A stretch of 64,000 bases of DNA from NCBI GenBank assembly GCA_965235115.1, contig OZ249436.1, forward strand, positions 10,354,001 through 10,418,000, in the 5' to 3' direction. This DNA is from Laetmonice hystrix (Eukaryota). The position numbers and the translations under genes were made by a program. The notes beneath the pieces are model-generated. The model ran no database searches. It saw only the letters and a program-made list of their open reading frames with translations, and was not told the DNA's origin. Positions 2,939 through 61,897 of this stretch are shown here, piece by piece. Positions within the stretch are counted from its first letter, which is position 1. The number at the start of each line of letters is the position of its first letter.

Positions 2939-2939
2939 A

Positions 2940-20400: not shown

Positions 20401-20711
20401 TAATGGCGCAATTTACTTGTGCAAGGTTTATTTGTGCTGGAGGATAAGGTAAATGGGTCCCAAGAATGAAGCAATGCCCATTACAGTGGGCGGTAATGGT
20501 CATTACCCAATGTATCAGCTTAATTAGACTGGCGGCTGTCCCTTTTATGGTTAAACTTGGCCAAGTGGTGTAAGGTAAGAAAACGGAACATTGCTAGAAC
20601 TAGTTGATTGAGAATCAACTCGACAATACAATATCTGCATGGACATGTAGATGTACATGTCTGTGTGTATGGAGACTTATGTACCTCGAGACACAAACTC
20701 TGGCCTCCAAA

Positions 20712-23599: not shown

Positions 23600-24270
23600 G
23601 TACACGCAGCATGGCATTCCTTCTGGGTAGCTGCAACCCCACAATAGTTAGGGTGATTCCAGTACAGCTAACCATCTTTATTATGTTGAAGCATGCATAT
23701 TGCCACAGTGACTGCCAAACCAATGCAATTGCTGACTTGCCCTATTGTGTAGCGGCTGATACAAGTAGACCTAGACCGCAGGTTTCTTGCTAATGCTAAG
23801 TACTTGATATCATGCCAGTTGAGATTCACCTTTGTTCTGGACTTGGTATCTTCTACAGGACAAGCCTGTATGATCTACGCCACCTCCTCATAGGGGAGAA
23901 AAGGCCACATCCGTTGATAATATATATCCACCAATTGTCATGCCCTTGCACGCCACCTTAGCCTTACCAGAATTGGCAACACATCAGGCAAACAGCACCT
24001 GACTCAGTCCCTTTCCAAGGTGAAATTACTGGCCACTATAGTTATATAGCATTCAGTTGCCAACACTTTTGACCCTTGATAGCATGACATTTATGAGATT
24101 CTCACCGAGATCCAAGCTTTCATCTTCATCATGAACACGGCCTGGGATCACATGTCAGCAAAGAAGAAAGAACACTTTCACCCTCACCCAACTTTCTTCA
24201 GTGCATACAAAATTAACAATAAGGTCGAGCCTGATCTTGAAAAAAATTCCTAAAGATCATTCACCGACAC
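23600..24270 (-). mobile_element. Degenerate LINE reverse transcriptase fragment
   Basis: Minus-strand segments in RT order: FFSRSGSTLLLILYALKKV...CSFFFAD; SLDLGENLINV (24119-24087; xLGFGxxFIxW); NFTLERD*VRCC (24027-23992; F.L.RGVRQGC); IKYL (23808-23797; KYLG). Confidence 0.5.
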
Positions 24271-25898
24271 TTGTTAAACGCATTTATTTACCTGTCCAGA
24301 CGGGGGACATCGAGGCCCTCCATCTTTATAGAGCATGTAATTCGGCACTGTAAATGAAGTGTGCTCTCAGGAAAAGTGGCCATGCAGCGCCCAGGTACTC
24401 GCTGTCTGCTGCAGGGTTGCCCGTCCCTTTTAACGAGAGATCTCTCCTTTGTGCGTCCCTGGAAATTTGGTGATGTACGGCGCAGGTATGTAATCTGTGC
24501 ACAATGAATACTTCTGAACAGTCTATAAACCACTCCATGGGTTAACATCACTGGCGTCCTCTCTACTTGGTATGTAAAGTGAATGAACTGGTCGAAACGA
24601 CGTAAGAGGCAACAGTCAAAGAAATGTTGTTTTTATGAGCCCAAAGGTTTGGGTGATGTAGTGGAGTACGTCGGTACATGTGGTGATATACAGTGAACAC
24701 ATGGTGACCGCAAGCTAATTCTGAATGCAAACGGACGCTCTGGCATGCTGCTTATACCCTGCAGATCATCCGACCTGGCAGAATAGATCTACTTGTTATC
24801 ATCTGATTGTAGAGAAAGATATGTTAACACACACTTTTTGTGAGGGTTATGATCTAACCATAAAATTATCAGTACGGAAAGCTGTTTCTTTAAACCTTCA
24901 ACCTTTCCTATTGAAGATCTTTGACATCTATGCTAACTGTAAATCGTGTCAGTTTAGGACATGGGGTTTACTTTTAATAACTCAAGGGTAGGACTTTGGT
25001 GTCAGGGAGTACCAGGTTGTTAGCTGCTTTATTTCCATTCCCGGGGGGTCCTACCTGCCACAATGATCGGAAAACCTATACGTACAATCAACCTGGTACC
25101 ACGCCGCATCAAAGGGCTCACAGAAGGTGATGGATTTCATTCTGATATCAACTACAGAAACGCTGAGTGTGCAGCCATGAGGAAAGCTGGCCTTCGGTTT
25201 CCGTCTCTGAAATCAGAAATCTTACGTATTCCAGAGATTTCTGCCAGCCTAGCCTGGGGTGACCAAGGCTGGAATAGCAGACTGGGGTTTGTGTCTGATG
25301 ATGTCTAGGCAGAGACGAGCCCATCTCCCTGGTAACATGTGGGTACCACACCTCAAGCTCAGCAGCAGCTAATGTAATGATGTACAGAAGTCCTGCATTC
25401 CATCAACAGATCTCAGATCTACCAGGGCCTGCCTGCCGGCCTGGCTGGCACAGCAAACCTCACCCTCGTGTCTGGCTATCGGCACAGAATGTGGGGGTAG
25501 TTTGCTATAAAGTACGCGGCCAGTGCATGGTCAGCCCTCGATATATTGAGTCCAGACTCAGACCTATGAGGCGCGCACCCTCCGACCTCTAGGAAGCCAC
25601 CTCTACCGGCGTGCATATGTAGCCATATCAACAAGTGATATAACTGATCTAATCCAGACACATCAGACAGCACGGCCTCCAGGATGGCCGAGATCAATCA
25701 TTCCTGCCCCCTTACCCCCGCCTGTACCTTGGCTGGCCACCGTCCCTAGCTCAACTGTTCACCTCCAGTACCGACCCATTGCTGTGACCAGTCTACCATC
25801 GACCGCCATCATCAGACGGTGCTGACCTCTAGGAAGGACCTTGATCGAGGTGAGACTGGAGGATATTTGGGGGATCACTACTCCGATTACAACAATGT

Positions 25899-25944
25899 AA
25901 CAACAACAACGACAACAACAACGACGACAACAACAACGACAACA
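25899..25944. repeat. (AAC/GAC)n microsatellite
   Basis: aacaacaacaacgacaacaacaacgacgacaacaacaacgacaac. Confidence 0.9.
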
Positions 25945-26979
25945 TTCGATTGACTGTATGGTTGGAAGTGGAGCTTACTCTATACTCACTCCCTGCTTTT
26001 GGGATAACAACTGATCAGAACATCATGACCGATTCCCGAAAATGACCGCTTAGTGCTATTGAGTACGCTCAGGAAACGGCTTTCTCTGCTTCAATGCCAC
26101 CAGTATAGTTATACCAATACCAGTTTCTACCTTAGAAATGTAAGTCCGTCAGTAGACTGTTTTTTTACCCTGGTGCCATCTGTAGGCGGCTAGCTGTCAC
26201 TTCCCTGGTGCCATCTGTATGACATTCAGCTGGATGGCGAGAACGTCCACGAGCCAGTATGAGTGAGTGGAAGGAATCGAGGATCCCCTACTGTGGACCT
26301 CTGACCAACCGCACGATACTTCCTATGTCAATGTTTCCACTTCCTTTAAACTTCTTCTTCAGTACGCTTTGCCACGCTTACCGCAAGGCAACCGACGCCC
26401 ACACCCAACATAAACGACACAAACGACGGAAGCAGATCAATTCAAAAGTCACCCAAACTCCAATGTTGGAGTTTGGCATCGAGATTTGCCGTCAATTGAG
26501 CTGTTTCAGCGACAGGGACAATCTAACGATATATTCAATGTGTGCGTTACCTTGGACATCTCTCTAATAAAGTGACTCAAGTAACGTTTACACTTGTCAG
26601 GTCATAGGTTTATCAGGAAACTTTCTCTTACTCCAACGTGTTTACTTTTACCTCTGCCTGATTACCTACAAAAGTAGACGGTATCTTTATTGCAGAAAAC
26701 ATTCCATGGACCTCAGCAGCATGGAAAAAGTATAGCAAAATGGCCCGATATATTCAGAGAAACCTTTGGAACATTTATATTATCTTTTACAAGACAGATC
26801 CCTTAAGTGTTTGCCTTCTACTTCGAGTACAAATATCGACCAAAAACATTAAGCGGAAAAAACTTCTGAAGTTTGAAAAACTGCTTGGGGGATATTTCTG
26901 CCAGCACCGATTTCCTCTGCTTCCGACATGTCTGGTTGTATACTCATATTTATTTAAACCTGCGTGACTTATTTTGATA

Positions 26980-27150
26980 AACTATCTTCACGAACCTAAG
27001 ATCGGAACATCTGACCCTTGATCTTCAAAGGCAGGGCTTAATTCTGGCCGGCTAATGATGCGTTCAGCGGCCGGGGTGCCTGCACCCAGGTGTGGCCTGA
27101 CCCGATGGCAGAGGCCCGGTGTGTTCAGCGTGGCAGCGGGGCGGGTGCTG
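26980..27150 (+). mobile_element. Possible extreme C-terminal fragment of a Tx1-like LINE
   Basis: TIFTNLRSEHLTLDL followed by RWQRPGVFSVAAGRVL resembles Tx1 ORF2 termini (RWxxxGVxCxV). Weak. Confidence 0.25.
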
Positions 27151-28066
27151 AGAACCAATCCACCCAGTGACCAGCCTGGCCACACCCGATATCTTCCACT
27201 TCACTTCATATTAGCCAACTTTCAAGTGCTTGCACTGCTTCCCCCTCTGCCAGTCGGATCTCAAGAAGCTGGCCAGAGAATGCAATAATAGCGTTGCACG
27301 ATACAGACCTAGCTGAACAGATGAAAAAACTTACACAAAGCTTTTCATGGCCAGTTGGACAAGTCACAGGATTGGTTTACAAATGATAAAGAGGAATCCC
27401 AATAATATGCAAGGCCTGACCTAACCTAGAGCAGGGCTTTTGTTCTTTTATGCCGTCTTAGTGTAAAAATACCCGCGGTTAGAATTCCATTGTCGACCAA
27501 ACAATTGTGTTGTGACCAATAACCGTACGGGTTCATTGTCACATGTGAGAATTTCAATCTGTTCACAGCTATCATAATGAGGAGCACCCTGTACAGTAAT
27601 GAAAGTAAACTGCTAAAAATAACATTATGAATAATACCAGATATAAAAAAAAGATGACCATTAAGCTTCCCCTGAAGGTGTTCCAAGTGATGATTTTATG
27701 TCGGTACCAGGGTCGGGATCAGGGTCTGATCCTGGCTGATCCTGTGTGGGTGTTATCCCTGTAATACCGGCATCCTGCTGTTAACTACATTAGATGTGCA
27801 CACCCACCATCCCCAGCTCAATGTTGTGTTGTTCTCGGGCCCACCCGATAGGCTGTGTCCTATTATAATCTGGTCCTATGGCATTCAGGTGATCTGCTGT
27901 GTATTACCCTGCATAGAGCTCGTCTCCGCCGATCTGTCATCTCCGATGTTTATGTAGAGATGGCAGTCAGCCATGTGTTCACTCTGATATCTATAGGCAT
28001 CCCGCGCCGCGTCAGCCCACCCTGGCCACCATACGGCCCACCTTGGCCACCATCAGCCTCCGAGGC

Positions 28067-28155
28067 ATCCTGCTCTGTATTATCTCCCAACACCTCCCCT
28101 GCTTCTCCCTCAATCCTGCTCTGTATTATCTCCCAACACCTCCCCTGCTTCTCCC
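28067..28155. repeat. Perfect 43-bp direct duplication (period 46)
   Basis: atcctgctctgtattatctcccaacacctcccctgcttctccc at 28067-28109 and 28113-28155. Confidence 0.9.
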
Positions 28156-29976
28156 ACAATCTCACACGGCTCTGCATCAATTTGATGCAATTCGTACCAA
28201 TCTGGGGGCCATATTAAGACACCTTCCCCGGCGTCGCTCGACTTCGGACCACCGTGCCATTCTACAAGTGGTTCTGGCGCAGACACACATACTGCATCCT
28301 AAATTATTGCTATCAGCAGTTCTTTCTAAACGTTTCCGTCCGTTTTTTCCTACCTACACTGTGTACATAAGAGCAATGTGTATATGAGAACATTTTAAAC
28401 ACTTACAAATTTATCTCTTTTTTTAAATGAGACAAAAAGAAAGGCTTCCTTGAAATGGTATCATATGAGTATTTCTAAAGTATCACATTTAAAATATATG
28501 TGTGTAAATAACACATGTGTGAAATAAAGTAATGTAGCCCCCATTGTATGCATGGGTAATTTTTGTTTCCGATTACTTTTATAGCTTATTGTGTAAACAT
28601 CCCGAGAAACAATCTAAAATGTCAATAATAAAGAAGGTAATTATGAAACTGTGCTAAGTCCATTTATCACTCGGAGTGAAAACATTTTAATGCCCTTTAT
28701 TTCCTCTAAAGAACAGGTGTGAACAGATGCATAATTGCAGAAAGAAACTCATTTTAACTGAGGCCTGATGACGGGAAATGAAGGGCACCGGCAGACGAGT
28801 AGATGATTGGTGATATAACGAGATACGAGATAAAAAACGACAGGCGCACGGCAGCAAGGCAGGCCTCAGATGTTCTTATAGAGCAAAGGTGTGAACATAT
28901 TCATGGGCTCTTGCATCTTAATTACTGGCATGCAAGGAATCATCAAATGACAAAAACAGTAACAAAGACAGATGAGGGGTGACATAAAGAAAAACACCAC
29001 TCGGCTCGAGAACAAGGAGCTAGCCATGATAGCGACAGCCATGGTGAGGTGTTTGAATGGGCAGTGAATTCCTCCTCCACCAATCACATTTGCATTGCTG
29101 CTTCAGTGCAGATTATGTTGTAATTACATTTCTGACTGCCCTCTGTGACTATGGAGATTGTGGGACCCGAGGTGGGGCCAGAGCGTGCATATGTCAGTCA
29201 GACCCGTCGCCGCCCCACCTCCATTGAAATGCATTAGGGCTCTACGTTTGCACATTGTGTCTGATTCCAATTCGGAACAGTGGATCGAGGCGGCACACAA
29301 GTGGAAGTTGCGCTCCTCTGGGACCCACTCCAGTCACACGATCAGCCAATCAATTCGCAGGACCGTCGAAGGGGTGGCCAAGGCAATTTTGGTGGCAAGC
29401 ACACCGCCCAAATTACTTGACACCTTGCTGATGTCTCCACAGCTGAGCTGCACCTGAATTTTTCATGGCAAAATTGGTGGCATAAATCAGCATTAGCATC
29501 TTGGGCTGTCCGCCCTGATCCAGGATGGTCCACCTTGAACTACCACTGTTCGCCGGTTAATACCAAGGGGTAGGGGAAGGGGGACGGGGCCAACTGCCTC
29601 CTGAACCAAGCCTGCTGAAAATGGGACCTTCCTGCCCACCATAACATGGGCTCGTCGAATTCCTCAAATGCCTACTCCTTATAATATGCTCATCACCCCC
29701 ACCACCCCACTCCGTCCCGACACACACTCACACACAACTACATCATGCTCACACATCTGATGGGCTGTTCTCCGACCGAAAAAATGTCAGCAAGCTCGAG
29801 TCTACGTGGATAAATTCATAAACAGCCATCTGTGCCAATCCTTTATGAGGGTAAATGACAAAAGCTTCCCTTCTCTGCCATAGGTCAAACAAAGAAGCAC
29901 CTTTCCCGTCTCAACCCATCTTCTGAAGTACTTCAAAGTGGAACTTCAAAAAGGCAGACGGCAGGCCACAACGTGG

Positions 29977-30210
29977 TACTGGACTGTACAAGGCTGTACT
30001 AACAACTGTAAAAAACGACACCTACCAAATGATAAATCTGGGCGAAGAATTTCATGTCACCGGAGTGTGAGTTGCACCTCATCATTCAACAGTGAGAGTC
30101 AAAATAAAAATCTATCTACATCCTGTGCGTTTCATTGGCACTTCACCGCGGTTAAAAAACCAGATCTGATGTCCGTGATCTGTGACAGATGGTTTCACAA
30201 TACTAACTTT
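29977..30210 (+). pseudogene. Degenerate THAP zinc-finger coding relic, probably transposon-derived
   Basis: Translation YWTVQGCTN...RRISCHR...WHFTAVKKPDLMSVICDRWF...NF follows THAP spacing (CxVxGCxN...ISFHxF...W...AxxR...ICxxHF). The first Cys is replaced by Trp (TGG) and the ligand His by Trp, consistent with decay. Confidence 0.5.
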
Positions 30211-30435
30211 TTACCTTCACATTATCACAACACTTTCGCTGCGAGTGTTCAGAACTCAAGGTATGCGCTCATCATGCGACTTCGTCCCTTCTTGTCGCTA
30301 TTTTAGTTACTTCTTTTATTTTTTCTTCCTTTCTCTTTGTATACGGGTGCATTATCCCAGAGAAGGTACTACAGGAGCACGGGGTCTGATCAAGTCGAAT
30401 GTCAACCCCGAGGCATCGCCATCAGCCTCCACAGT

Positions 30436-30481
30436 CACACCCCACCCCACCCCACCCCACCCCCATCCCCACCCCCACCCC
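30436..30481. repeat. (CACCC)n-type C-rich simple repeat
   Basis: cacaccccaccccaccccacccccatccccacccccaccccc; G-run rich on the minus strand. Confidence 0.85.
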
Positions 30482-31126
30482 GCCTTTACACTTACTGTCT
30501 GGTGGTTATCATGTCGGGATCATTTCCAACGGCTTGTCTTGCCAATCCCCATTACACAATCATCAGTGTATGATCAATATCATAAATACCTAATGACATG
30601 CTGTCCACCCCTATCCTGACCACATCAAATACCGCCTCAACAGAATCAACACAAATCAATACGAATGACATTAAGATGGCGGCGTGAGACACAACACTTG
30701 GCATGATCCCAAAGCCCTGCTCCTCCGCCCAATGTTTTATTAATGCCACAACGATTCTGCATGGTTTTTTCTTTCGGAGGTCGGATGGGGATGGTGGGTG
30801 ATTTGATGCAATCCATGGATAGCGACGGTCAGGGGCGGTCAGTATTCACTCAGCCTGTGAATATCAGTATGAGAGGGCTGACCGTAACATTATCAAACCT
30901 ACAATCAAACCTATAAAACGGTGATTGAAAATACAGGAGATCTCTACTGGATGTAACCTTGCCGTTCACAATGTCGTAACAAAATGTACGTTCTGTTTCA
31001 CGTAAAAAGGTCATCTGAAGCAACATTACAGAATCACCTTAACATATATAGACTCGTATACTGGGAGTGATGATTCAAATAATTATTCAACACCTAAGAG
31101 TTCCTCAAACAAGAGCGGACCTGATT

Positions 31127-31164
31127 CTTTCTATGGACACTCGTCCTTTCTATGGACACTCGTC
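31127..31164. repeat. Tandem duplication, 2 x 19 bp
   Basis: ctttctatggacactcgtc twice, head to tail. Confidence 0.9.
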
Positions 31165-31216
31165 CTTCAAGAGGCCTGATCGTACAGTGTTGTAATTAGC
31201 GTCATCAGGTCAAGAC

Positions 31217-31323
31217 TGACTCCATCCACCTGCAATAAACTCCTGTCTTTGACCTGGGGACAACACCCAATGACTCCATCCACCTGCAGTAAACTCTTGT
31301 CTTTGACCTGAGGACAACACCCA
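31217..31323. repeat. Tandem duplication, 2 x 54 bp
   Basis: tgactccatccacctgca(a/g)taaactc(c/t)tgtctttgacctg(g/a)ggacaacaccca twice, 3 mismatches. Confidence 0.9.
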
Positions 31324-31599
31324 GGAGTCCTGGCCACCCTCCCTCCTTGTCAACGGCCGGTCAGGAGGAGAGCCCCGGACGGACGCCTCCCTACCGGCCG
31401 TCCCAATCAAACGATTAGACATATAACAATTGCTGATCCGTTTGGCTGCCCCTCGAATAGTGGCAATCACCTCAATGATATGATTATGTTGGTTAAACTT
31501 GGAGTGTGTGGCCTCGCGGGGCCGTTGATAACACAGATAACTCTGGCCGCCCGTCTTCTGCTGACAGTAAACGGCTCCACCATCCCCTCTCCAGTGCGC

Positions 31600-32600
31600 G
31601 GACCAATCATTGGAGAAATCAAAATTCTATGGAATTTTGTTTAGGGGCAGGCACCAGAGCACACAATTACATTTGTCGGGCAAATAGGCCATAATGGCAT
31701 CATGAATTGAATTTCAAATCGCCATGGTGTGACTCCTTGATTGCCTAACCAAATGAGTGTCGGTCCCAAATTGATCAACTACAACCAGCGATCGCGTCTG
31801 CCCCATTTCTCTACTTTGTATGAGGTGAATACTAAACAAGCATTTTGTCCAAGATTTAGCTTTATGTCGCTTAATACCATTAGATGCTTGCCGCGGAATG
31901 ACTATTACCTTGGTCCAACCCACCTGGGAGGGGTAACACATCCTTTTACATGATGCCAGAGATGTGGCTGGGGACTGGCTAATTTCCGCACCACTGTCCT
32001 AATAGTAATGTATTGTTAAAATTTCATTTGCGGTGCTTAAGCGAGCAGCATGAAGATCTCAAAGGATCAAGAAATTGAGAGTTGAAGAGCTTAAGGCATC
32101 GAAGGCGTGAGATGAGTACAATTTGGGTGCATCAGAGTGCAGCACAGTGAAAGCCCCACTGAGCCTCTGATGGGCAGCCATCTCAGCATCTTCTAATTGG
32201 GCACTCAGCGGTCAGGCCATAGGGAGGGACTTAATAGTATAGTGGGCTTGATGTCGGCTTGATGGCTTAATACTGAGACCAATAGCATTTTCTCCTCTAA
32301 GAATGTCCGTGTACAGACTGAGGCTGCGGTAGAAGCCGGTAGACTGTGTTCAACCTTTAGCTCCAAGGTCGTGAACACAGCTGTCCTCGGGACCCGGGGA
32401 GTCCCTGCCTGAGACCATCCTGCACGCCTCGATCAAACCAGTCGCGTGTTTCTCCCATGGAATCTTTCAGAATTCAATTCCCAGGGAGGCACTTAGGACT
32501 TTAGTAGACATATTGTCTGCCATAGAACGGTAATGAAGCACGGTTTCTGATAGGGGTCGTTCTGGCCGTGCCAGGCCGGATATGGTAGGTTGGCACTGAC
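31600..32600 (+). mobile_element. Degenerate L1/Tx1-clade LINE ORF2 (end of RT through the C-terminal zinc knuckle)
   Basis: At 31621 AAA ATT CTA(t)GGA ATT TTG TTT reads KILGILF with one frameshift (Tx1 KILGxxF). Then FMSLNTIRCLPRNDYYLGPTHLGG (FLW...LYLP...GG), CPRDPG.../PETILHA (ETILHA at 32411-32428; zinc knuckle C..C...ETxxH) and FLIGVVLAVPGRIW. Order matches Tx1 ORF2. Confidence 0.6.
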
Positions 32601-33631
32601 CGCTGTTATTGCCCCACGGGTGGCTGTGATCGCCACCCATCATTTTAACGACACCCTGATCTCTAAAACTCGCCGCACCCACGGGACGAGCCCGCTTACA
32701 ATATCTCCCATGACAAACGACCGCGCCGACTGAATCTGGCACTGAATAAACATCTACTACTACACGCACCCACACACATCACTGATGATGTTATGAAATG
32801 TCTACCGACAATAAGTGGTGTGATACCATGTGAAAGATTAAAGGGAGGTCAGACCTTTGCCATCGGCAAACAGCATTAGGCTATCTGACAGTGGCCAGGA
32901 TTGGCCGCGCACAGTTCCTTACTGCCAACGCTACTCACCACCGACCAGCACTTTTATATCATTGCTGCTGAATTGATCCTGATGGCAGGAGGCAGCAGTT
33001 GATATAAGAGTGACCGGGGGCTGCTCATCGTGTTAGTCCTGTCAGCTGAAGGGGCCTTAATAATGACACTCTGGTCGGTCTGACACCGACTACAGTCCGA
33101 AACCAGCCGAGTCTCTCCATCCTCATCTGATATCACTGTCTCAGTCTCAAGTCTCGTTTTCATTTCATGCTTGGCTCACCACGTGCCACTCTACCTCCTT
33201 ACCGAGATAAGCCTGTCCAGCTAGCCACGTCCACGGTCAACTCATTCTGGGATAAATGAAGGCTTTTAATGTCAAAGTTCGATGATTGCCTGATGAAGGA
33301 CTCTACCCTTACATGGACCCTTCGCTGTCATAATATCAATATGACATTTCTGAATCACATTTGCTAAGTTTATCATTATTCTAGACTATGGGCTCTTACT
33401 GCAAGGGTCGAGCCTGAAGCCTTTGGCTAAAATCGCTTGGCCACAGGACGGTGTTGGATGCACATCCTGATTTAATTTTGGAAGCCTAATACTGTAAAAT
33501 GCCTGTCCTTATCTAACGCAAAGTCAATTTCTGATCACCTATTGATGCGTTGCTATGGTAGCAGTGGTGCCACCTCTGGCCTGAGAACGGATTGACCTGT
33601 GCTGCCACCTACAATCAGATCAGACCCGATA

Positions 33632-33734
33632 CCGGAAGTTCGTGGTCGCCGGTCCCAAACGAAACACGACGGAGACAGACTATATCAACTTAAGCTTCAA
33701 ATGGCCCCCAAATCGTTCTCAGTCCGTGACGTCA
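33632..33734. promoter_or_regulatory. CpG-rich patch with ETS (CCGGAAGT) and CRE (TGACGTCA) consensus motifs
   Basis: CCGGAAGT at 33632-33639 and TGACGTCA at 33727-33734 in a locally CpG-rich stretch. Motif presence only. Confidence 0.3.
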
Positions 33735-34868
33735 ATGCAGCCTAATCGACGTCTTATATTTACATCTGATGAAATATGTAGTTTTATCAAACGTTTTGAA
33801 AGCGAAAGGTAACTTCTAACTTCAGGCTCTCTTGCACTGTTTGGCGTTGATCATAATGTCAAACCTATACAAATATAACTAAAGAAATGTACCCTAGTAC
33901 CACAATTTAGAAGTGTGCAAACCGGGTCGTTTCAGGAATCAGTGAAACGGTTCTGCTCCATTCTACGTTGTCAAGTTGGCACACAATCTGATAGTTATAC
34001 ACATCATGGTCACCCGCAAATACAATCGTGCCATTCTCGACATTGTCGGTTATCTTCTGTAGTTCGACACCAAGAGCTGGGATTATACCAATAATGTACA
34101 TCTCGATATGTTTGAAAGTTTATAGGACCATACAGTGCAATATGGATAATAAACACCCCACTCAAAGAGAAGTCAATATACACCATGGCACCATTCTTCT
34201 CGAATCCACTTCAATTCGTCTATAAGACATTGTAACAGTGGCATTTAAATAACCTACTGAGCTGGTACCAGACAACAACACCACAACGTCTTTACAAGGA
34301 GGTCGCATTGTTCGACTATAGCCACGCACATACAGAATATTACAATATTCATTGTATCTGAACACAACGGAGTATCATTCGGTGCAGGTATGAATATTTC
34401 ATAGCTTTTTGATAGAATAATTTTGTCCCATGTTTTGGCAAGCAGGCGTGCTACTTTACACTGTACAACTATTGATGAAGCCATGCTAAACACTCCAATT
34501 AAGCATTCTATTATTTTCATTACGCAGCGACCAGTACAGTCAATACGGCGTTGCCAACAGACCATGTTGTGTAACATTCTATTGAATCGCGAAACCTATT
34601 TAATTATTACAAGGAAATTGACATGAAAATTTAATTTGTAGTATTAACACACAAATGATGGACTGACTTCGTGACAAAGGTGGTTAGGGTTCCCAACAAT
34701 ATCACACTGCTTGGTCAATATACACAAGCATGAAAAGATTTCCACACATTTCTTTTTTGCCACCTAAGAAGACTGACGATTATTTCCCACGAGAATTTTT
34801 ACAGTTGATGTCTGACTATCCGAGCAGTTACTGTAGGGGTTGTCACAAATCTGCCTGTGTTGGTCATT

Positions 34869-34917
34869 CTGTATTTTGACTGACATACTTTGTCTGTATT
34901 ATGACTGACATACTTTG
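34869..34917. repeat. Tandem duplication, 2 x 25 bp
   Basis: ctgtatt(t/a)tgactgacatactttg twice. Confidence 0.9.
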
Positions 34918-34974
34918 ACTTCAACCAATCTCTTTTGTACTGCCAGTGGGGTTTAGGGCGTCTGACTCACTTAC

Positions 34975-35008
34975 CCTTGGGATGATGTCAGAACAATGGG
35001 ACACTCAC
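34975..35008 (-). other. Candidate recursive splice site with 34-nt RS-exon (cryptic/poison micro-exon)
   Basis: The minus strand reads ttttaatggcctgttttttatttcag|GTGAGTGTCCCATTGTTCTGACATCATCCCAAGG|gtaagtgag: a strong 3' splice site immediately followed by consensus donor GTGAGT, with a second consensus donor (AGG|GTAAGT) 34 nt downstream. Same strand as the ARID3 exon. Confidence 0.55.
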
Positions 35009-35277
35009 CTGAAATAAAAAACAGGCCATTAAAATATTTGCTTCGACACATTAATTTTTACCACTCGAACAAAGTAAATATAACGTTAAGCAGACATAGC
35101 ATTGATGAGCTCTAGTATTGGCCAACAGAGAGAGAGAGCGACAAACCAAGCCAATAATTGACTTAAATATCATCGTTCAAACTTATTTCGAACTTTGAGA
35201 AATCGCAAGAGGCTACTGATAGCAACGATTATCAACATATTCTAGGTAACCTTAATCCCTATTAATATCAATAAGAC

Positions 35278-35607
35278 ATCTGGACATGGGCAATATATCC
35301 AAAAAGGTTCTCCTTGATATCTGGACATGGGCAATATATCCAAAACGTTTCTCCTTGATATCTGGACATGGGCAATATATCCAAAACGTTTCTCCTTGAT
35401 ATCTGGACATGGGCAATATATCCAAAACGTTTCTCCTTGATATCTGGACATGGGCAATATATCCAAAACGTTTCTCCTTGATATGTGGACATGGGCATTA
35501 TATCCAAAACGTTTCTCCTTGATATCTGGACATGGGCATTATATCCAAAACGTTTCTCCTTGACATCTGGACATGGGCAATATATCCAAAACATTTCTCT
35601 TTGATAT
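35278..35607. repeat. Minisatellite array, 41 bp unit, 8 copies
   Basis: Unit atctggacatgggcaatatatccaaaacgtttctccttgat; period confirmed (tggacatggg at 35281 and 35322). Confidence 0.97.
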
Positions 35608-38600
35608 GACACTGGTCCGATATAATTACCCGCTACACTGGTTTACACATGTTTTCACAGCTCATTCCCACCTCAGGACAAGACATGGGGTTATACCAAG
35701 ATACAATGGTGAATGTAGTACCAAGTAGACCGTTAAAATATACCCGTTATACTTGAATGTCTACAAAATGCCGGAAACGACTGATCAACAAAAGAATCTA
35801 TCAAGTTATGAAGTTCAGGTTGGATTTAGCATGCATGAGCATAAGGAACCCCAACTTTTTCTTATTACTGATATGTTGTCAGATATCATTTGACACTCAT
35901 GACTCGATGTTCCGAAGTACATGTAGATAGTCCACCTCCGTAGGCCTAGACATTGCTCCATCAAAACGACAGTAACATTATGCCGTTATGATCATCTACG
36001 AACGAACACATAAAACCAAGCAATTCCTAGTTGTTCACTACAGCATAGGCATAGACAATGCGCCTGGCACGGACAGAGGTGATGCATGGTTCAATGCCAT
36101 TGGCCTGGCGGGGGCATACATTGGATGGGCTGGTCCACAATCTGACTACTAGCAGGCCCTTCTATCTTACCCTTCAAGTGTCTACCCTTAATGGTTAAAT
36201 TGCATGTGTAGTGGTTAAGAGGTCGTCGTTGTGACATTATCCTTGGCCATCCAACCATGGCCATCCAACTGAGGCAAAGCCCATCTCCTGCCAAACTGAA
36301 ATAGTCGCACTGAATATGTACTGCATATGACGAGTTTATGCCAAGCGCATGTTGACCAATTTGACTGTCATGAACTCGAACCCCTGTACTGTCATCCGAG
36401 TACTGGTTGGATGGTCAAACAGAAGCAGTTGTTATTGGTAACCAGCTGACATTAATATCTAAGCAAGCCGATCAGAAATGAGTTTTACTCAGATAACTCT
36501 GCCGATGTAATTAATTTTATAATGGAAACTTAACTAGTACATAGGGTGACATTTTATACCAGTATAAGTGGCAGTTCTTTCCTTCACTGACTCCACAATC
36601 GTGTCATTTAAAATAATATTCCTCACTGAGAGTAGAACATTTATTCCTTTTTTCTCTCTCCAGTATTTTTCTCTCTCCAGTACTTCTCTCTCTCTCTCCA
36701 GTAACACGGCAATAGTGCGGTGATATCAGGCAGTGAGTAGCCCGTGGAGACCACCACAATATGATGACAACCCACCCAGTGCCAGCCCAAAACCCCGTTC
36801 ACAGGGCCACCCTTCCCAATAGCTCGCACTGTGCAGCACCCAGGTGAGGCGAGGCAGTGAGCTGGCTCGTTCATCCGCCACAATTCACACCTAGTGGGCC
36901 ATCTGTTGTGACGTTTGACCCCTTGTGGCCTGCCGTGTAGCGTGAGCCCAACAACAAACGAGCCTAATTATTCAGCCAACACATGTTGGCATTCCTCTCC
37001 ATACAACTTCGCACCATTAACTTTTTGTTTTCATTACACTGTCCACATCTCCATAAACGACACAAATTTGCATGGAAACGTGATATCATAATTCTCCAAT
37101 GAAGCCAACACACCTGAGTGCTGGAGTCCAAGTGAAGGCGTCATCAGAGAAAATTGGTGGCGGACCACCTCATTAATTTGGACTGATGAAGCGGAGGCCA
37201 TTGATGAGTCCCTGCTCTGCAGAGGTGCTATCAACTCGACTCCTCTCCCATTCCAATTAATAATACACCCTGTAAATTTTCATGAAATTCGGCCACTATC
37301 GGGGCAGCCTTCAGACTTGAGCATGAATTATGGTTGCCGTAACCCATACAGCCTGCCTCACATGACCTTTATAGGTCCCCAAATGCACATTGCCAAAAAC
37401 CAATAAAACTCTCCCGGGGATAGTTTTTCCTTTCCACTATGATTATCACTGCAGCCTATGCAGGGTTATGTGTGAAATCACTACATTATTGGTCCTGGGT
37501 GGGACTCGGGACTGGGGCTAATTGTTGGAGGTGATGAGTCTACTATCAACATGCTGCAACCCTATATTAAAACAGCCCTATCCTTATTTAGCAATCGATT
37601 GGCCTTGCAAGGCCGGATCCTAAATGCAAAACATGTTGGTTCCATTGCTCTGAAATGACATTCTATTCACCCAATCCTTCCTCAACAAAAATAGTCAAAA
37701 TGGTCATTAACTAGCATCTTGAGAATATTATTCAATAAACAAAACAGCCGATGCTACGCGAGTATGAAAATATTTAGAGGAAAGAAGGCAGAAGCATTGG
37801 TGGTAACTGTTCCATCTCTGACGGCTGATGTAGTATGGCTGTCAAGGCGAACCATTCATTGTTGAGTTGTTGGGAGATACCGCAGGGTAAGCCATTCCTA
37901 CACTGCTCCGAGCTACCACTCCACCACAGCCCTTGTACCCACGTCAAGAATGTCATTATCCCGACCTGACTGCAAGCATAACCTCCAAGCATCTGGACAG
38001 AAATAATGCACAACAGACCCGCCTACGTTCCTCATTCGATCATGTGAGCTCACAATTCGTTAATTATGTCACTTTGTGCCATCCATTGTGGCCTGGCCTT
38101 TGGCCTTGACCCGTGACCTAGCCCTGTGTCCTCCAGACTTCAGAACCCCTACTAGGTCATAGGTCAACTCGAATGGAATTACTGTTGGATCTGTGTGGTG
38201 TCTGGTGCACTGGCTGAGATCCCAAACTAATGAAAGTGATCTTGGGATCGAGAGATCAAGCAAGTGGCAATCTTCTGGCCATCACGTTTGCTACTGCTAT
38301 CTGCTCCTTTTGACCTCTGCCTTTTCCCTCTTTCCATGAATCTTCTGAGCTGACACAAGCCACCACAATTCAATTAGATTTTTGAACTTCAATGATTGAA
38401 TGAATGCGCATTGCGTATGACTTCTTGTCATTGCCAATCCAACTGAGACCTCATCTACGTGCGTATACATCAGTGTTGATGTATGATATTCGCTGGTCGC
38501 CAAATTACTCCTTCCTGATAACTTCATTTGGGGCACACAGATTACATGAATCTCATCAATACACAAGCGGCGGGGGGAGCAATGCCGTGAGCTGACCTCG

Positions 38601-39229
38601 GAGCGGGCCATGCTCTCTCACCTACCGATTTGCTGCTCATTGCTCCTGGCATGATGAATACGCTCTGCTTGACAATAATGTATTTACGTTTGGTGTTGTT
38701 CGGGAAGCTGATGATCTGTACGCATCATGCGGGGCTAGGGCCTACTACTTACAGCGGGGATGGCATGCACTGATCATAAAGTTAAGGCCATGTTGGGGAT
38801 TGATGCATCAAAATACGCTGAAATCTTGCTGGTCAGAGGAACGGTTCTTCTATAATTGGGACTCAACAATAGCTCTCCCACTCTCGGGCCTAGTTTTTAT
38901 TGTCCAAACATTGCTCATCACGGCCTAGGGAGCAGCAAACGACTTTCCTGCCTTGAGGGATAACTTCAAATTTGTTTGCATAATTTTAATGCATTTTTTC
39001 ACCATTTCAGATTGCCGAGGCTTTGGCTACATTCCAGATATTTAAAGAGTACCTAAGAGCCCCAGGATCGTCAAATACACTTAATGCCAAAAAATCTGGG
39101 GTAGAAGAAAGTTAACAAACATATATAAAATGTGTGGAAAAAAGGCTTAAGTTACGAGTAAGTGCAGCAAGGGAGCATATTCCCTTAAGATTTGTGATTT
39201 TCCCGTCAAATTTAATAGTGTGCATTAGA

Positions 39230-39620
39230 TGGATAGAAATATCGATGATGCAAGAAAATATCTAAAGGCACTCAAATGGTTGTTGGGATATGAAAACGCA
39301 CATTCTTTGCCAACTACACCAACACTTTCTACGATTAACTACTGAGATAATACTTTACAACTCTAGTGAATCTGAAGAATGCCGTAAAGTTTCAGATGAA
39401 ATATCCCCACCGGTAGAGTATACTCCATTTTTATCATCCTGATTAAATGTTCTATGTGAACACATATATTCATACGCGTCCTTCGCAATGAAATCCTGTG
39501 CCCTTCTACTCAGTACGTCATTAGACAACATATGGAAGGAATGCATGCAATAAGCGGACATATAACAAGGCCCGAAAATAACCTCATTCCAATCATGTGC
39601 AGGAGTGGACAAATTAATCT
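39230..39620 (+). mobile_element. Possible decayed CR1/L2-type LINE C-terminal fragment
   Basis: IDDARKYLKALKWLLGYENAHSLPT resembles the post-RT segment (KFxKWLLGV..ST.N) of CR1/L2-like ORF2; stops follow. Weak. Confidence 0.3.
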
Positions 39621-42600
39621 ACCTGTCACGACATAACGAAATATTAAATCAAAGCTGCACTAAAAATCCCCTGGTTGTAAACATATTAAGATCTTATCTG
39701 GCTGCATCTCAACCACTGCTGCAGCATATACGTTGGAATAAAAGATAATATAATGCCCGAATGGCACACTGTTTAATACTGTAATTACGTATATTTAGGT
39801 ATCCCTGCTAGGGGCGGGGAGACCTTTTGTTTTCAGCGTTTTGTTTCATACTATTTATTTCTGTTTTCTTTCCAGGAATTAATTCCATTTCACTTTATGC
39901 TTAATAACTCATGCATGCACTTTTTGCTCAAGAAAGTCCAAATTTTCGGAGGATGGTCGGATTGCTCCTGGCTCTCAGATGTTTCTTTATTTGTGTCGCC
40001 TTTAGGCGTTCACCTGGTTTAGCCACAAGACACAAACGTTCTGACGACTTAATCTGACAAGATAATGCTCGGATCCCTCTCAAATATGAACATCTGCCGA
40101 GTTTAACTCAGGGCTAGATCAAATTTGAATATAATTAAGATATTGCAAGTATTTTTTCATGTCGGGATTATTCTTTTACGTTACTTTAGGTCTACACTGT
40201 CTAAACTTTAGTAAAATACGAAATGAGTGTAAAAATCGAGGTTTAAACATCATGAGAACGCTCGCTTTCAGGCCGTCACTGCACCTTGTAACGTGCCAAG
40301 TTCAGTGGTGCCGGGGCGATAGGGCGACCCTTGGTGGTCCAGTGGCTGTTAGCTGACCACAGATAGGCAGTGCCGTAGGAACCGGGGGGGGGGGGGCACT
40401 AGAATGAAAATCTTGAAGAGCAATTTTTTTCAAACATGTGACTTGCGTTATTTCCAGAGCGTGGATACATGTTTTGGCCTAATAATCTTTTGTTTCGGCC
40501 TCAGGCTCAAAGCATGTTGTTACGTCACAATTCTTTGCTCAAAAAGCGGGTACCTTCTGCTCAACTGAGCAATTTCTAGGGTCTACTAGACCCTATACCT
40601 CTGTATCGCAAATATCTGCATGTGCAAGGAAGTATGGCCTCCTTCAATTGATCAATTCTATGCCGGTTTCTCGTGGCTTTCAGACAGCATTGTGTGGAGT
40701 TTGCCTGTATTGTAATTAATCATGTGACGAAGTTCTAATTTTCCTGTCTCCACTGTATATTATTTCCTATCATCTACGATCACAAGAACTGACTATCGAC
40801 CAGAGTGCCCGAGTCGGACCACACGAGTATGGCCCGGGGCTGAACATGGTGTGATACACCTTGACATTGTGTGATAAGTCTCACCAATGTTAACATTATT
40901 ATCACATGCTGAGGCTTGACGTCAACCAATCATAAATCACGTTGCATGTGTAGATGACGTGTGTGTGGCGAGCGCGCCTGCTGACAGCAGCAGATGGGTG
41001 TGCCTACGTGATGCGCCCACCGGAGTTCCGTCAACACTCCTACAAAAGTCTCCTTCACACCCTCCCATTGTATTCCATCAAATAATCTGACACGATTTCA
41101 AATGTGTCAGCCTTTATTTAGATTGTTTTCCACTTCTCCACACCCACCGATACTTGATGTTAATAACCCACTTTTTGTGTGCAGTTAATTGACTTGAGCA
41201 GCAGGCGGGAGTTTTGGCCTTTGTGTAGTGTCCTAATTGGAGCGGACCCCTACACGCCTCATTATTTCATGATCTTTGATCACTTTCTAGTATCGCATTA
41301 ATCAAAGGCAGGTGAGAGAGGTTGTTGTCCCCTCATCTGGTCACTCTGACGCGCACACTAGGGGGGGGGGGGTGTTCAATAGATGGAAGTGTTGCTGGTG
41401 GGGGATGTGCTTTGTAACGGAGCCGACATTGAGAAAGTCAACAATGAGCACATCACCAGAGGCATGCCGATAGAAGCGTCGCAAGTCTTTGATAGACTTG
41501 ATAAAACAATAGACCTAACACTGACAATTGATTCCTCAATTACTAAAAAACGAATATAACTGAAATAGCTTGAAATACATTGTTTAATCACCCCAGTACC
41601 ACCGTATGTCACTGTACGATGAACATTTAGGAGAAAATTAACAGTTCCCGCTTTTGACAGCGTTTGAAAAAAGTACATTTACTTATACTTGTTATAGCTG
41701 CCCGAATAGTTTGCTCGGAATGTAGAGACATATGTTCAGGGTGGATGGGTTTTACTGACACTGACAAATACTTGCAGTGTTTAATTGCAAGCTTTTTATG
41801 TGTTTGGACACGGCGTTAGTTGGGAGATCACTAGCATTTCCACACCTTCGTTATGGTTTCCGATTGCACTAAAAACGGACCGACGCACTGCCTGTATTTT
41901 TCGAAATGGTTCATGCAAAAGGCGGTGATACTATCAATACATCAATGCCAGCAATATTAGAAGGCAGGAAACGTCTCACTCTACATGTGTGTAATCACTA
42001 GTGTTTGTATCTCCAGTATGAAGCTACCCTGTAGACATCATAGATCAATGTGGATGTAAAGTGTAGATAGTCTACCATGCCGCACCTAATAACTGGTATA
42101 TGCCTAATTCACAACACCCTCCCTAACCATTTTAATGTGGGTCCAGCTGGGGTGAAATAGTTTTATGTGTTTGTGCACTGCTACGTTATATGACAGGGCA
42201 ACATCTATTATTCATCATTGCTTTCGCTCACCCACCCCCCCATCCATCCCTTTTGTAATTACTGGAGCTTCTCAGTTCATATAAAGCCCCATTGGCAGGT
42301 ACCCAAACCAGTAACTTTCATACACCTTATTCTAAATTACCGTCCATTATCCTACTGGCTGAAGGTAGTCCTACTTTATAATACGGCTAGGTTCGGATAC
42401 TGTGGGGGACCATGGTGCATTTCAAGCTTCAGATAGTGGTTAATATCCTTAACTTATTTCTGAACTCGTCCTCTTAAAAAGTTGCTGGTACCGTTGTCTT
42501 TTAATAAACCTCCCCTCTGAGAGTTAAGATCAGGACAAAATGTAGTGTAAGAGGAACTAGTCATTGGTTTGGCAGAGGGCCCAGGGCTCCAGCTCAGGGC

Positions 42601-43789
42601 CGAGTAGGGCAGTAGGCATGCAACACTAAGCAGAAATTTATGGACGCTACCATACCTAGGTTAACAAGGCGATCTGAACTTTAAGAGGAAAATATCTACG
42701 TTTCGCTCCCGTTTTTAAAAACAAAGCCAATACATCAGCACGGTTAGGAAGACATCAATCCTACAAAAAAAGTTCGTGCTGTGGGGGGCAGTCGCGCATA
42801 TAAATTTAACCTCGTAGAGAGCTTTCCTGAAACATTAGAAGAAATTACCCTTTTTTCAGGTGTCAGCAGCAGAGCTGATGTTGTTTTGGGTAGAATATGT
42901 CATATATTATCGTAATGGCCAGCTTATTTGCTGAAATCTTCACATGAGAGAGATTTCGATTTTAACTCAAATAAAAGTTACCAAATTACGCCATGCACCA
43001 AACCATTCCGGATATGTCAAATGTTTGTAGATATTGCATGGAATGATTATATTTCAGGTTTAGCTCTGTCCTATACAACAGTACGGTACCAACCTATACA
43101 CGAGGGAGTAGAAATTACAAAAGCAAACTGTAAATTTAATAATAAAATATTTACAATGTTTATGTTGCCAAAAAATGTCCGGGGAAAATCGTTAAACCAT
43201 TGAAAGCAATCAGAGAAGCTGCCAAGTATGCAACATTTGTTCGAACAGATCTCGCTTCAATAATTGATGGTTTGCTACAATAAAACATGACTTGATCTAA
43301 ACACAGGTAGTACTGGCGGCAAAAAGTCATGCATATTGGATGAAATTGTAAATAATTAGCCTGACTTATTGATGATATAAGTGTATCGAGTGCGGCACAC
43401 CATAGCAATGAGCCATGGATTGGCCACTTCATCAAGTATTTAAGGACTAATAGTTGTAGATTCGGAGAATCAGCTGATGCTGACACAGCTCTTATATCGA
43501 ACTAATGACTGCGGATAACACAAGTTTACACTTTTAACAAACTCCTGCCCCCAGCACTATACGACCCGCTCTAATCTAAGCCGTCCTAGACCGTATGAAA
43601 CGCACACCATTTGTTCAACTACATTTTATCCATTTATTCCAGATTTTACCAGATTTCGGATTTGTAATTAATTATGTTTGGTATAGTTCAGGAATAGTCT
43701 ACACGATTAATTCATTATGGAGTAAAGAACCAAGTAAACAACACGAATATCAATGGGTAGATACATCCAGGGGTCAAACAGTCAGTCAA

Positions 43790-44090
43790 AACAGGCTCAA
43801 GTCTTTGATGACCGAGATAAAGGCAGCCAAACTCTTCTATCGTCTCTGCTGCTACCAATGGTGCTGCAGCTGCAAGAGGCAAGTTAACGTGTCGATCATA
43901 GCCATAAACTTTGTGGGTGACCAGAGAAGGAGAATTAGATCACGGACTATCATCACAGGAAAACACCTGCGTCAGATCAGACGACCTGAAAATACCTTCA
44001 ACTCCCAGTATGACTCGATGGGACCTGGCCTCCATATCCCTGCTTTAGATCAGAATTTGAAGCATCTCCCGTTGGAAGTTAATGCCGCCG
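43790..44090 (+). mobile_element. Decayed Penelope-like element, GIY-YIG endonuclease region
   Basis: Part of ORF 43595-44119: LFYRLCC...CSCKRQVNV (YxIxC..CxKQYVG), GDQRRRIRSRTIITGKHL (GHRSDIR...V..HF) and QNLKHLPLEVN (LKTLxPxGLN), in the order of PLE GIY-YIG domains. Confidence 0.45.
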
Positions 44091-44384
44091 TGTGGGGGAA
44101 CCCGTTACAAGAAGATTAAGGCAATCTGCAGGCGGCCAGGTATCTACGGGAGTCACACTGAGCCCCATCATACCACGCTTATCTTTCCCAGCCAAGATGT
44201 CTACATTCTGTTATCCAGCATCAGATGCAGACTATAGTCATTATTTGCCTGAGCATAAAACAATGTTTCACACTGGTATGTGAATGTAAACAACGTGAAA
44301 TAAATTTTCACCACGTGCGATTCTTTTTCCTGGCTTCAATACAGCATGAGAGGTTCAGTTCGTTTTACTAAACTATACGTCTAA

Positions 44385-44540
44385 ACATGCGGTAATCGAA
44401 GACGCCGTCATGTTCCTATTAATACATCAGTTGATGTACTGGACAGTATATAACGTTCCGGTTGCTTTTGTTGACCTAGACTACAGATACTTTGGGTGTG
44501 ATTCATCAAGCACCTGAATCGACTCTTCATCAAAAGAAAC
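44385..44540 (+). mobile_element. Rex1/Babar- or L2-like RT fragment
   Basis: VIEDAVMFLLIHQLMYWTVYNVPVAFVDL resembles STEDAIxxxLH...HLD...VRMLFxDFSSAF of Rex/Babar RTs; frameshift after FVD. Confidence 0.45.
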
Positions 44541-46299
44541 TGGCTTACTTTGTTTTTCCCCTTGGTCAGGCGGAGAGTGCAAGAAAATAAGAAAAAGGAA
44601 GATCTATGACCTATAGGGATCTAACTGCTCAATTTGACAGGAAAAACAGGACAGAATAAAGAGTTATGTGAAAAAATTCACATTTTAAGTGCAATGATGA
44701 TACAAGTGCATCAACTGGCTTCGGAGACGAACTGAGAAGCTTGTGTTTTTCATAAACACTTTGCTCTCACCAAAAAATTAGTTTCTATCATTTGAAAAGT
44801 GCATTGCTGCAACTGTGTTACAAATATGGGAACCATTTACTGGCGTAAATGATGCCATAGGAGCTGCAGCAACCAATTTGAAGGATCTTACACACGTGTT
44901 CATGAAGTAAGTAAGTAAGTTATCCCCAGCTATACGATTTCTGTTCTCGCAGATTGCCCCTTAGCGAGAGATTGGAGCAGCAGGATGCTGTCAGTCGGAG
45001 TGGGCATCTCGACGACTGCCCGCCTGCCCTCCTCCGACAGGGGGTTAGGACTGTCACTACCCCATGTGACAGCCCTGGGGTGGGCTCACCCTGTTCTCCT
45101 CCAACCCCAGCCCTGCACCTGCTGGCACCCTTCAAGATGACTGCAGGATTCCATAGCAACCAAATGCAGGTAGGATCATCAAGTGGCTTGGCACCTCCGT
45201 AAGTTTCTGACATGATGCAAATTGTACGTCAGACCGACCAGTACGTCACGGAGCGTCATGGATACCGCCGGGAGAAATGATCCCGCCACCGCGGTTCCCA
45301 TTTCCAACTCCTACAAATGCACTTTCTCAAATGTCTCTATTAAGCCATGTTAACAAATAACAGTAATGTTATGCTGCCTGGTGCACAGTAGTTTCAAAAT
45401 CATCTTGGAAGAAAGAAACTTCAAAACAGACTGCCAGAAGACTTTCATTTCATTAACGTCTTTTTTCTATTTTCTTTGTAAGAATCTTTCTTTGAATGTC
45501 ACCTGACATGAAATCGCCATGAAGGTAATGGTAACTGTTCTCAGGTAGCCTGAAGCCAGCGTGAACAATGAAAATCATGCATTTAGACCAGGTAGACGTT
45601 GAGGGCAGGTGACACGAAGATCTATATCGGCCTGCCAGTTTGCCTGATACACCTGCATGGGATCCATCGAGCTGTGATTGCTGTGGAAGTGTCGCCAGGG
45701 TTCAAAGCTACACCTTCATTCGTCACCTCCAACAAGCTCCAGAGGTCACTGAAGGTCAGAGCTCAGACATGCTATAGCAGCCAATAGACCCCAGAGGCTA
45801 TGAGAATGTCAACATGTTACCTTTGACGTTGCTCGTCATTGATAGCATAAATGACAAAAAAACAGTTCTTTTGAACTGAGAAATTGGTTTAACGACATTA
45901 CTACTGAGAAACCTTAGCTACCAATTCCCAAACCGAGGTGACTCATGTGGTAATCAACGTCACCCATATAATCACCCAAATCTACCAGGATTCCTTGGAC
46001 TCTATTGCAAATCTGGATGTTATTCACGGGTATCTACAGCTTACACCTCTGCTGACTTAACACCAAATGTGTGGGTAAATCAGGCAAGAAACATTCGCAA
46101 TGAACATAAACAATGCACTCATTAACATTCTTGGATTATCTGTATTACAGATTAGCAGTCTTCAGAATGGAGAGACCTCCGTGCAGTTTGAGGTGAGTAC
46201 AACCCGACCGACCATGAGGCCGTGGTGCCATCCCTCTTCCCGGTGTGCTGGTTAACAGGAAGATCGTGTGTAATTGTATTACTCTTCACCATGCTCGAC

Positions 46300-46600
46300 C
46301 CACTCTGGCTGACCAGCCGGAATATGAGCGAGTGCTGACAAAGTGTCTCTTCAAACTATCGCTTCAATCCCTTCGGCACCTTGCCCAATCTTTTCTCAAC
46401 GTATACCTTTATATTAAGCAGTCCATTCCGGAGGAGTTTGATGCACTGCCAAGAGACGTTCACAGCGTTGAATAGCTGCTGAATTGGGACAATCTTCATG
46501 CGCTTCCTAAAAGGTCTCGCTGGCGTTCTGTATCACGTCAAGTGTATGCATCCCCTGGCAGCTCCCGGTCTAAGGGAGACCGCCCCTGAGAACGGTTACC
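46300..46600 (-). mobile_element. Decayed Penelope-like element, GIY-YIG C-terminal region
   Basis: The minus strand gives GC...*Y..PARPFRKRMK (46517-46494; YxGETxRPxxxRxKEH), NIKV, DWAR (46390-46379) and IEAI (46368-46357), matching the PLE motif VKVL..E.DW..R.IKEAI.IR with frameshifts. Confidence 0.55.
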
Positions 46601-46699
46601 CATGTTAACCTCACAGTCACCATCTTCATGAAGATTCTCGAATTTCAGCATCAATGTAATTCGAGAATAATCTATTTCCCCAAGATTGAAACTACATCT

Positions 46700-46815
46700 T
46701 AGATACTTCCTTTTTTTATCTAGCGCCCAGAACTGCAGTCACTGACCCCCACTCCCCAGGATTCAAACCATGGCCCATAAACCAGCAGGGAGAGTCTATC
46801 CAGTGTTTGGATTTA
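46700..46815 (-). mobile_element. Possible tRNA-derived SINE fragment
   Basis: Minus strand cactggatagactctccctgctggttatgggccatGGTTTGAATCCtgg: a B-box-like motif (46756-46769) preceded by an A-box-like tract; no intact cloverleaf. Confidence 0.35.
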
Positions 46816-61880: not shown

Positions 61881-61897
61881 GGGGGGGGGGGGGGGGG
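61881..61897. repeat. Poly-G tract (17 G)
   Basis: Homopolymer run seen directly. Confidence 0.9.

Follow-up and report, generated by a model that had tools for sequence, protein, structure and literature searches.

The question raised by this locus is whether the long phase-1 intron of a putative ARID3 (dead ringer) gene carries, close to its midpoint, a recursive splice site at which the intron could be removed in two steps. A sequence-only reading of the window, which is the whole 64,000-nt stretch of DNA analysed here, had pointed to a 3' splice site immediately followed by a 5' splice site on the minus strand, and had proposed that this junction serves recursive splicing and perhaps a poison-exon switch. 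The answer depends on the gene in which the junction lies, on how often such a junction arises by chance, and on what splicing to it would do to the donor and to the reading frame.

The host intron and the anatomy of the junction

A Pfam ARID profile search of the whole genome returned one ARID3-type exon, at window positions 2048-1865 on the minus strand (51.4 bits); many invertebrates have an ARID3 exon that is 100% identical to it. In its N-terminal part the protein has its best named match in the annelid Owenia fusiformis (53% over 317 residues). The parts of the gene are listed below, in window positions unless a contig is named; here and throughout, a slash within a sequence marks a splice junction.

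1865..2048, minus strand: ARID-domain exon, (G)TPVNRIPIMAKQ...AAFTLRTQ, starting in phase 1, with acceptor ttcctttcag/GG and donor CA/gtaagt
2049..64000, minus strand: in-window part of the ARID3 phase-1 intron, 64,527 nt in all
G000:C1:10420576-10420648, minus strand: upstream 73-nt exon encoding LYELSDDPKRKEFLDDLFSFMQKR+G, 2.6 kb past the window end
25 kb further upstream of the 73-nt exon: another exon, which ends in ...WTFEEQFKQ and has a likely start codon

The 73-nt exon ends in AAA CGA G/gtaagg (3'-terminal letters ...ATGCAGAAACGAG, exon end G000:C1:10420576). The candidate site is on the sense strand, at a distance of 31,567 nt from the intron donor, 49% of the way along the intron. 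Ratchet points are to be sought on the sense strand of introns longer than about 10 kb in transcribed genes, and the 64,527-nt ARID3 intron is of this kind. The sequence-only reading had made its case depend on position 35008 lying within the ARID3 transcription unit, and it does lie there, on the sense strand of the 64.5-kb intron.

All 16 six-kb bins between 1 and 96 kb have a negative GC skew on the plus strand, and the skew is positive further on, a pattern consistent with a single minus-strand transcription unit and a divergent neighbour. The sign changes at ∼96 kb when the window numbering is extended (G000:C1, around 10.45 Mb), a short way upstream of ARID3 exon 1, and this suggests a divergent plus-strand gene upstream of ARID3. 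In Owenia (L043:1-1320) and Pecten (L056:1-599) a WD40-repeat gene is found as the divergent neighbour upstream of ARID3, and this linkage may be conserved. The ARID3 intron also contains minisatellite arrays (window 6000-8400, with a GC content of 0.69, 20520-21930 and 48530-49560), which produce long spurious open frames on both strands.

At the candidate site the minus strand reads ttttaat ggcctgttttttatttcag/GTGAGTGTCCCATTGTTCTGACATCATCCCAAGG/gtaagtgagt, and is made up of the following elements.

35028..35034 (written 35034-35028), minus strand: branch-point-like TTTTAAT, which fits YNYTRAY
35029, minus strand: candidate branch A, 21 nt upstream of the AG/GT junction
35011..35025, minus strand: polypyrimidine tract cctgttttttatttc, with TT at -6/-5
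35009..35010, minus strand: AG of the putative recursive 3' splice site
35003..35008, minus strand: putative ratchet-point donor GTGAGT, which would read GAG/GTGAGT once ligated to the upstream exon
35008 onward (C1:10389008), minus strand: first letters GTGAGTGTCCCATTG
34975..35008, minus strand: predicted cryptic RS-exon, 34 nt (3n+1)
34969-34974, minus strand: RS-exon donor AGG/GTAAGT, 10.0 bits
34965-34970, minus strand: weaker overlapping donor TAA/GTGAGT, 7.2 bits

Every element named in the sequence-only reading (TTTTAAT, the pyrimidine tract, TTTCAG abutting GTGAGT, and AGG/GTAAGT 34 nt further on) matches the window letters exactly. A 3' splice site thus abuts a 5' splice site in the form cctgttttttatttcag/GTGAGT, an instance of the juxtaposed consensus (Y)n N YAG/GTRAGT, and positions -6 to -1 are t-t-t-c-a-g, carrying the TT that is typical of fly ratchet points. 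In flies, most recursive branch points are found between -36 and -21 (Duff et al., bioRxiv 10.1101/006163).

The site and its surroundings (261 nt) occur only once in the 627-Mb genome, and the reading frames that cross the site are short (26-39 aa). The site lies between, and not within, two tandem repeats, at 35278-35607 and 34868-34917; the first has eight copies of a 41-nt unit and is 270 nt upstream of the site, and the second has two copies of a 25-nt unit and is ∼50 nt downstream of the second donor. A dense heterozygous block, with seven substitutions and a 6-nt insertion within 70 nt, occupies window 35102-35169 in all three DNA runs and begins 68 nt upstream of the branch-like TTTTAAT. 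These variant data come from three DNA-like runs of one sample, which were assembled as DNA contigs and gave no joints; searches of sequencing runs with the site region and with the ARID exon found these three runs only, and no RNA run of the organism. The 273 nt of 34829-35101, which include the site, are free of variants, but this is not significant, as only ∼2 variants are expected there.

Rarity of the junction and a genome-wide class of similar sites

Acceptor-like and donor-like sequences may abut in neutral intronic DNA without ever being used, and a chance origin of this kind is helped by the very large number of windows looked at and by the choice of the best site by eye. Splice-site scores were obtained with approximate matrices, written from general knowledge and without training on this species. 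As an acceptor the site scores 11.2 bits, against 11.2 and 11.3 for two real ARID3 acceptors; as a donor, in place, it scores 12.7 bits, against 10.6, 9.1 and 6.7 for real ARID3 donors. It is the best-scoring AG/GT junction on both strands of 264 kb, and the only one of these 528,000 strand positions at which acceptor and donor both reach at least 9 bits. The sequence-only reading had called this combination the strongest on the minus strand, a statement that holds and that extends to both strands of the 264 kb. The scores of the site were never attained in 300 second-order Markov simulations of the intron, so that fewer than 0.01 such sites are expected per intron of 64.5 kb, even before a second donor is demanded. 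A chance junction would moreover be expected on either strand and anywhere, rather than halfway along a very long intron and on its sense strand.

The genome (627 Mb) was then treated as a whole by pattern counts, in which each pattern was compared with the same pattern read backwards. The junction motif was YYYYYYNYYYYAG/GTRAGT, and the full architecture adds GGTRAGT after N15-90.

Junction motif YYYYYYNYYYYAG/GTRAGT: 98; reversed, 58
Junction motif with GGTRAGT 15-90 nt downstream: 14, all unique and the candidate site included; reversed, 3
Control, junction donor changed to TGRAGT: 0; reversed, 1
Control, AG changed to GA: 0; reversed, 0
Control, second donor at 91-166 nt: 0; reversed, 2
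Control, second donor scrambled: 2; reversed, 1
Control, purine instead of pyrimidine tract: 5; reversed, 32, of which 30 are on one strand and are taken as repeats

The full architecture therefore occurs 14 times, against 0-3 in six of the seven control patterns and five in the purine-tract control. A second donor is present at 14 of the 98 junction motifs, where ∼1% would be expected as estimated from base composition. Enrichment is ∼3-fold for the junction alone and ∼5- to 10-fold when the second donor is included, and this genome-wide enrichment of the architecture argues for function. Chance retains some share, as the reversed pattern still finds its three matches genome-wide, and could account for 2-3 of the 14.

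The implied cryptic exons are 34, 36, 38, 42, 46, 47, 50, 50, 52, 54, 54, 55, 60 and 74 nt long, with a median of 50, and 13 of the 14 fall within 34-60 nt although the pattern permitted 22-97; the cryptic RS-exons of Drosophila are ‘~50 nt’ (PMC8605326). The ARID3 RS-exon is the shortest of the class, and at 34 nt it is short for exon definition. All 14 sites carry TT at -6/-5, where the pattern itself asked only for pyrimidines. This preference is also seen in the junction motifs at large: those of the TT type number 65 against 22 when reversed, while those lacking TT number 33 against 36, and hence only the TT class is enriched. TT at -5/-6 is found in 99.5% of Drosophila ratchet points, as compared with 44% of ordinary introns.

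Among the 65 TT-type sites there are 10 pairs of neighbours no more than 200 kb apart (∼1.3 expected), and the two members lie on the same strand in all 10. Such pairing would be produced by sites arranged in series within single transcription units. Examples are a series of three sites within 113 kb (G000:C3:8308741-8421780, plus strand) and the pairs C6:34762656/34784398 (minus), C12:13993258/14091327 (minus), C13:22101299/22147905 (plus), C18:18385848/18430938 (plus) and C29:19758111/19804150 (minus). The motifs in these same-strand series are spaced 20-100 kb apart, and the series look like multi-step recursive introns in other genes.

Taken as motif counts, these results show that the genome holds a real, strand-specific class of predicted fly-type ratchet points, to which about two thirds of the TT-type junctions, and nearly all of those with a second donor, would belong. 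With respect to the ARID3 site, we consider it improbable that the motif arose by chance. Two further genome-wide observations carry no weight here. The broad pattern TTNYAGGTRAGT...GGTRAGT (273 matches against 153 reversed) was set aside, both counts being dominated by minisatellite arrays. Positive GC skew on the motif strand at 13 of the 14 loci was downgraded, because a G-rich motif falls on the G-rich strand ∼70% of the time by chance (p near 0.05).

The same controls bear on another explanation, namely that the 34 nt, whose initial GTGAGT would then be a coincidence, are an exon of another same-strand transcript (an alternative ARID3 isoform or a non-coding RNA). Any transcript that crosses the region would have an exon defined by such a strong acceptor with a strong donor 34 nt away. 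Nevertheless, an ordinary exon starts with GTRAGT by chance only about once in 2,000 cases, and the control pattern for exons starting with TGRAGT found none; furthermore, the annotated ARID3 proteins of Owenia and of scallops run from ...FMQKRG straight into TPVNRIP. We regard an exon of this sort as very improbable.

Rebuilt donor, reading frame and predicted order of steps

The sequence-only reading had placed an Arg codon plus G before the intron, and had argued that, if this codon ended in A, splicing to the site would rebuild a strong donor. The codon is CGA, and ligation of AAA CGA G to position 35008 yields GAG/GTGAGT, which scores 11.6 bits as compared with 10.6 for the native donor of the exon. 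The second donor, AGG/GTAAGT at 10.0 bits, closes a short cryptic exon that is out of frame. The rebuilt donor thus exceeds the downstream donor (11.6 versus 10.0 bits), a small margin obtained with an approximate matrix that is not species-specific, and on this basis constitutive skipping of the RS-exon is predicted, rather than a switch.

We consider that the site is a fly-type intronic recursive splice site, or ratchet point, with a short cryptic RS-exon, and put the probability of this reading at roughly 0.7. It is derived from the anatomy of the site, its gene context, the rebuilt donor, the rarity of the junction and the genome-wide enrichment of the architecture. The 64.5-kb ARID3 intron would then probably be removed in two steps, as in flies, and by analogy with the fly and vertebrate mechanism we infer both use of the site in vivo and the following order of steps. 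Once the first 31.6 kb of the intron had been transcribed, the branch point, the pyrimidine tract and the AG at 35009 would be recognized; U1 bound at the donor 34 nt downstream would aid this recognition by exon definition, the 34-nt unit being defined as an exon. The upstream exon (...CGAG) would be ligated to position 35008, giving the first-step junction ...CAGAAACGAG joined to GTGAGTGTCCC and rebuilding the donor GAG/GUGAGU. This donor would outcompete that of the RS-exon and be spliced to the ARID exon at 2048, with removal of the 34-nt exon and the remaining 33 kb. The intron would thus be removed as a 31.6-kb and a 33.0-kb piece, leaving an mRNA identical to that produced by splicing in one step.

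Occasional use of the downstream donor would add 34 nt to the mRNA and destroy the ARID reading frame. In the fly genes kuz and Ubx, a donor mutation forces a frameshifting exon into the mRNA. A single donor mutation at the ARID3 site would be expected to have the same outcome, knocking out the DNA-binding domain.

Such inclusion could instead be the purpose of the site, if the 34 nt were a regulated cassette or poison exon (an ‘expressed RS-exon’) that switches ARID3 off in some tissues, with two-step removal of the intron as a side effect. The sequence-only reading had put forward a poison-exon switch, and part of this proposal stands: 34 being 3n+1, inclusion does put the ARID exon out of frame, as it had stated; the shift begins at the first residue of that exon, and out-of-frame residues take the place of the ARID domain. 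The two donors are also close in strength. Flies have expressed RS-exons (Ubx m1/m2), and in mammals this form is the more common one (PMC8605326). The premature stop that a poison exon requires was, however, not found in the sequence examined, the shifted frame being free of stop codons through the whole ARID exon; and the higher-scoring rebuilt donor favours skipping, as experience from flies and mammals predicts (PMC8605326). In addition, the 14 sites have no excess of either frame-preserving or frame-shifting lengths, and several of their cryptic exons contain stops in all three frames, which indicates that these are not coding; stops in all frames and the lack of a length bias are as expected of exons that were never meant to be read. 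A regulated exon accordingly seems unlikely as the primary role of the site, and the poison-exon switch itself is speculation.

Spiralian relatives and known systems of recursive splicing

The phase-1 intron between ...FMQKR/G and TPVNRIP is long in all three spiralians examined: 35.6 kb in Owenia (L043:14204-49843), 45.5 kb in Pecten maximus (L056:8416-53927) and 64.5 kb here. This shared length hints at conserved regulatory content. Neither the Owenia nor the Pecten maximus intron contains a comparable junction, a result that a chance motif would also give and that indicates that the site is not ancient. Intron DNA of this genome could not be aligned at all with that of Owenia, and the site is therefore lineage-specific at that depth. 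With regard to conservation of the motif in related genomes, which the sequence-only reading had named as a check, the comparison covers Owenia and Pecten, from both of which a comparable site is absent, and the Owenia intron DNA is unalignable in any case. An Owenia junction, cag/GTCAGGTGTCCCA, lies at 57% of its intron and resembles cag/GTGAGTGTCCCA, but was rejected as a coincidence, since it has a poor pyrimidine tract and lies in a local palindrome with unaligned flanks.

The closest parallel lies in the ratchet points with cryptic RS-exons of Drosophila (Hatton 1998; Burnette 2005; Duff et al.; Joseph et al. 2018 via PMC8605326), with which the site shares the juxtaposed (Y)nNYAG/GTRAGT and TT at -6/-5. 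As in flies, the site lies on the sense strand of an intron of tens of kilobases in a developmental regulator gene; it has a short out-of-frame cryptic exon whose donor scores slightly below the rebuilt one by the approximate matrix, it would divide its intron into segments of ∼32 kb, and it belongs to a genome-wide class, often in same-strand series. Recursively spliced fly introns are 11-133 kb long, with segments of up to 64 kb (Duff et al., bioRxiv 10.1101/006163), and the ARID3 intron and its two segments are within these ranges. The systems differ in host and in scale, as the fly has > 500 sites (PMC8605326) whereas ∼40-50 strict-motif sites are predicted here in 627 Mb of a non-insect genome. 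Furthermore, recursive splicing in insects has been demonstrated with RNA, while the present site is predicted from sequence.

The RS-exons of long vertebrate genes (Sibley et al. 2015; Blazquez et al. 2018, PMC6224609) resemble what is proposed here in that the RS-exon is defined first, the rebuilt donor competes with that of the RS-exon, and inclusion is out of frame. In contrast to the fly-type arrangement, however, fully suppressed intronic sites are very rare in mammals, with nine noted (PMC8605326), and large vertebrate introns show no sense-strand enrichment of the junction motif (ratio ∼1; Shepard et al. 2009, PMC2773006). In sea urchin, predicted RP-sites are 8.2-fold more frequent on the sense than on the antisense strand (Shepard et al. 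2009, PMC2773006). That study, like ours, used motifs and not RNA to predict that recursive sites accumulate in large introns of a non-insect invertebrate; it differs in having compared sense with antisense in large introns by means of gene annotation, and in having covered no spiralian (PMC2773006). Our counts were made in an unannotated genome, and draw on control patterns, the length of the RS-exons, the TT signature and clustering on the same strand.

A limited literature search found no description of recursive splicing in annelids or other spiralians. To our knowledge, recursive splicing has been proven by RNA in insects and vertebrates, and other invertebrates are represented only by the old sea urchin motif count; nor do we know of any report that ARID3/dead ringer is recursively spliced. 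If the recursive reading is right, which we think likely, the site would represent a known mechanism in a lineage for which that search yielded no earlier description.

On balance, we favour the broader view that fly-type zero-length ratchet points, with cryptic RS-exons of ∼50 nt and TT at -6/-5, form a genome-wide, strand-specific system in this spiralian, probably an annelid, comprising some 40-50 strict-motif sites, with ARID3 as one host. If this is true, the RS-exon mechanism, together with an acceptor signature regarded as fly-specific, would date to the base of the protostomes or earlier and would be no insect speciality. It would also suggest that animals have long and generally relied on cryptic exons to remove long introns in steps.

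Two closer relatives are present among the ENA assemblies, with exon 1 at 94% and at 66% identity. The exon-2 and ARID-exon reading frames, used as queries, matched no contigs of the 66%-identity relative, and contigs sharing the identical 53-aa ARID reading frame came from distant species, with alignment limited to the exon. In the part compared, the introns of the 66%-identity relative are about twice as long as those here, and 17.8 kb of its intron 1 was covered without reaching exon 2. Conserved non-coding blocks of this relative align in the ARID3 5' region and intron 1, and its distance is thus a useful one for judging conservation of the recursive site. The collinear blocks, at 70-88% identity, are L044:5041-6156, 8243-8809 and 18315-19525, which correspond to G000:C1 near 10.441-10.453 Mb.
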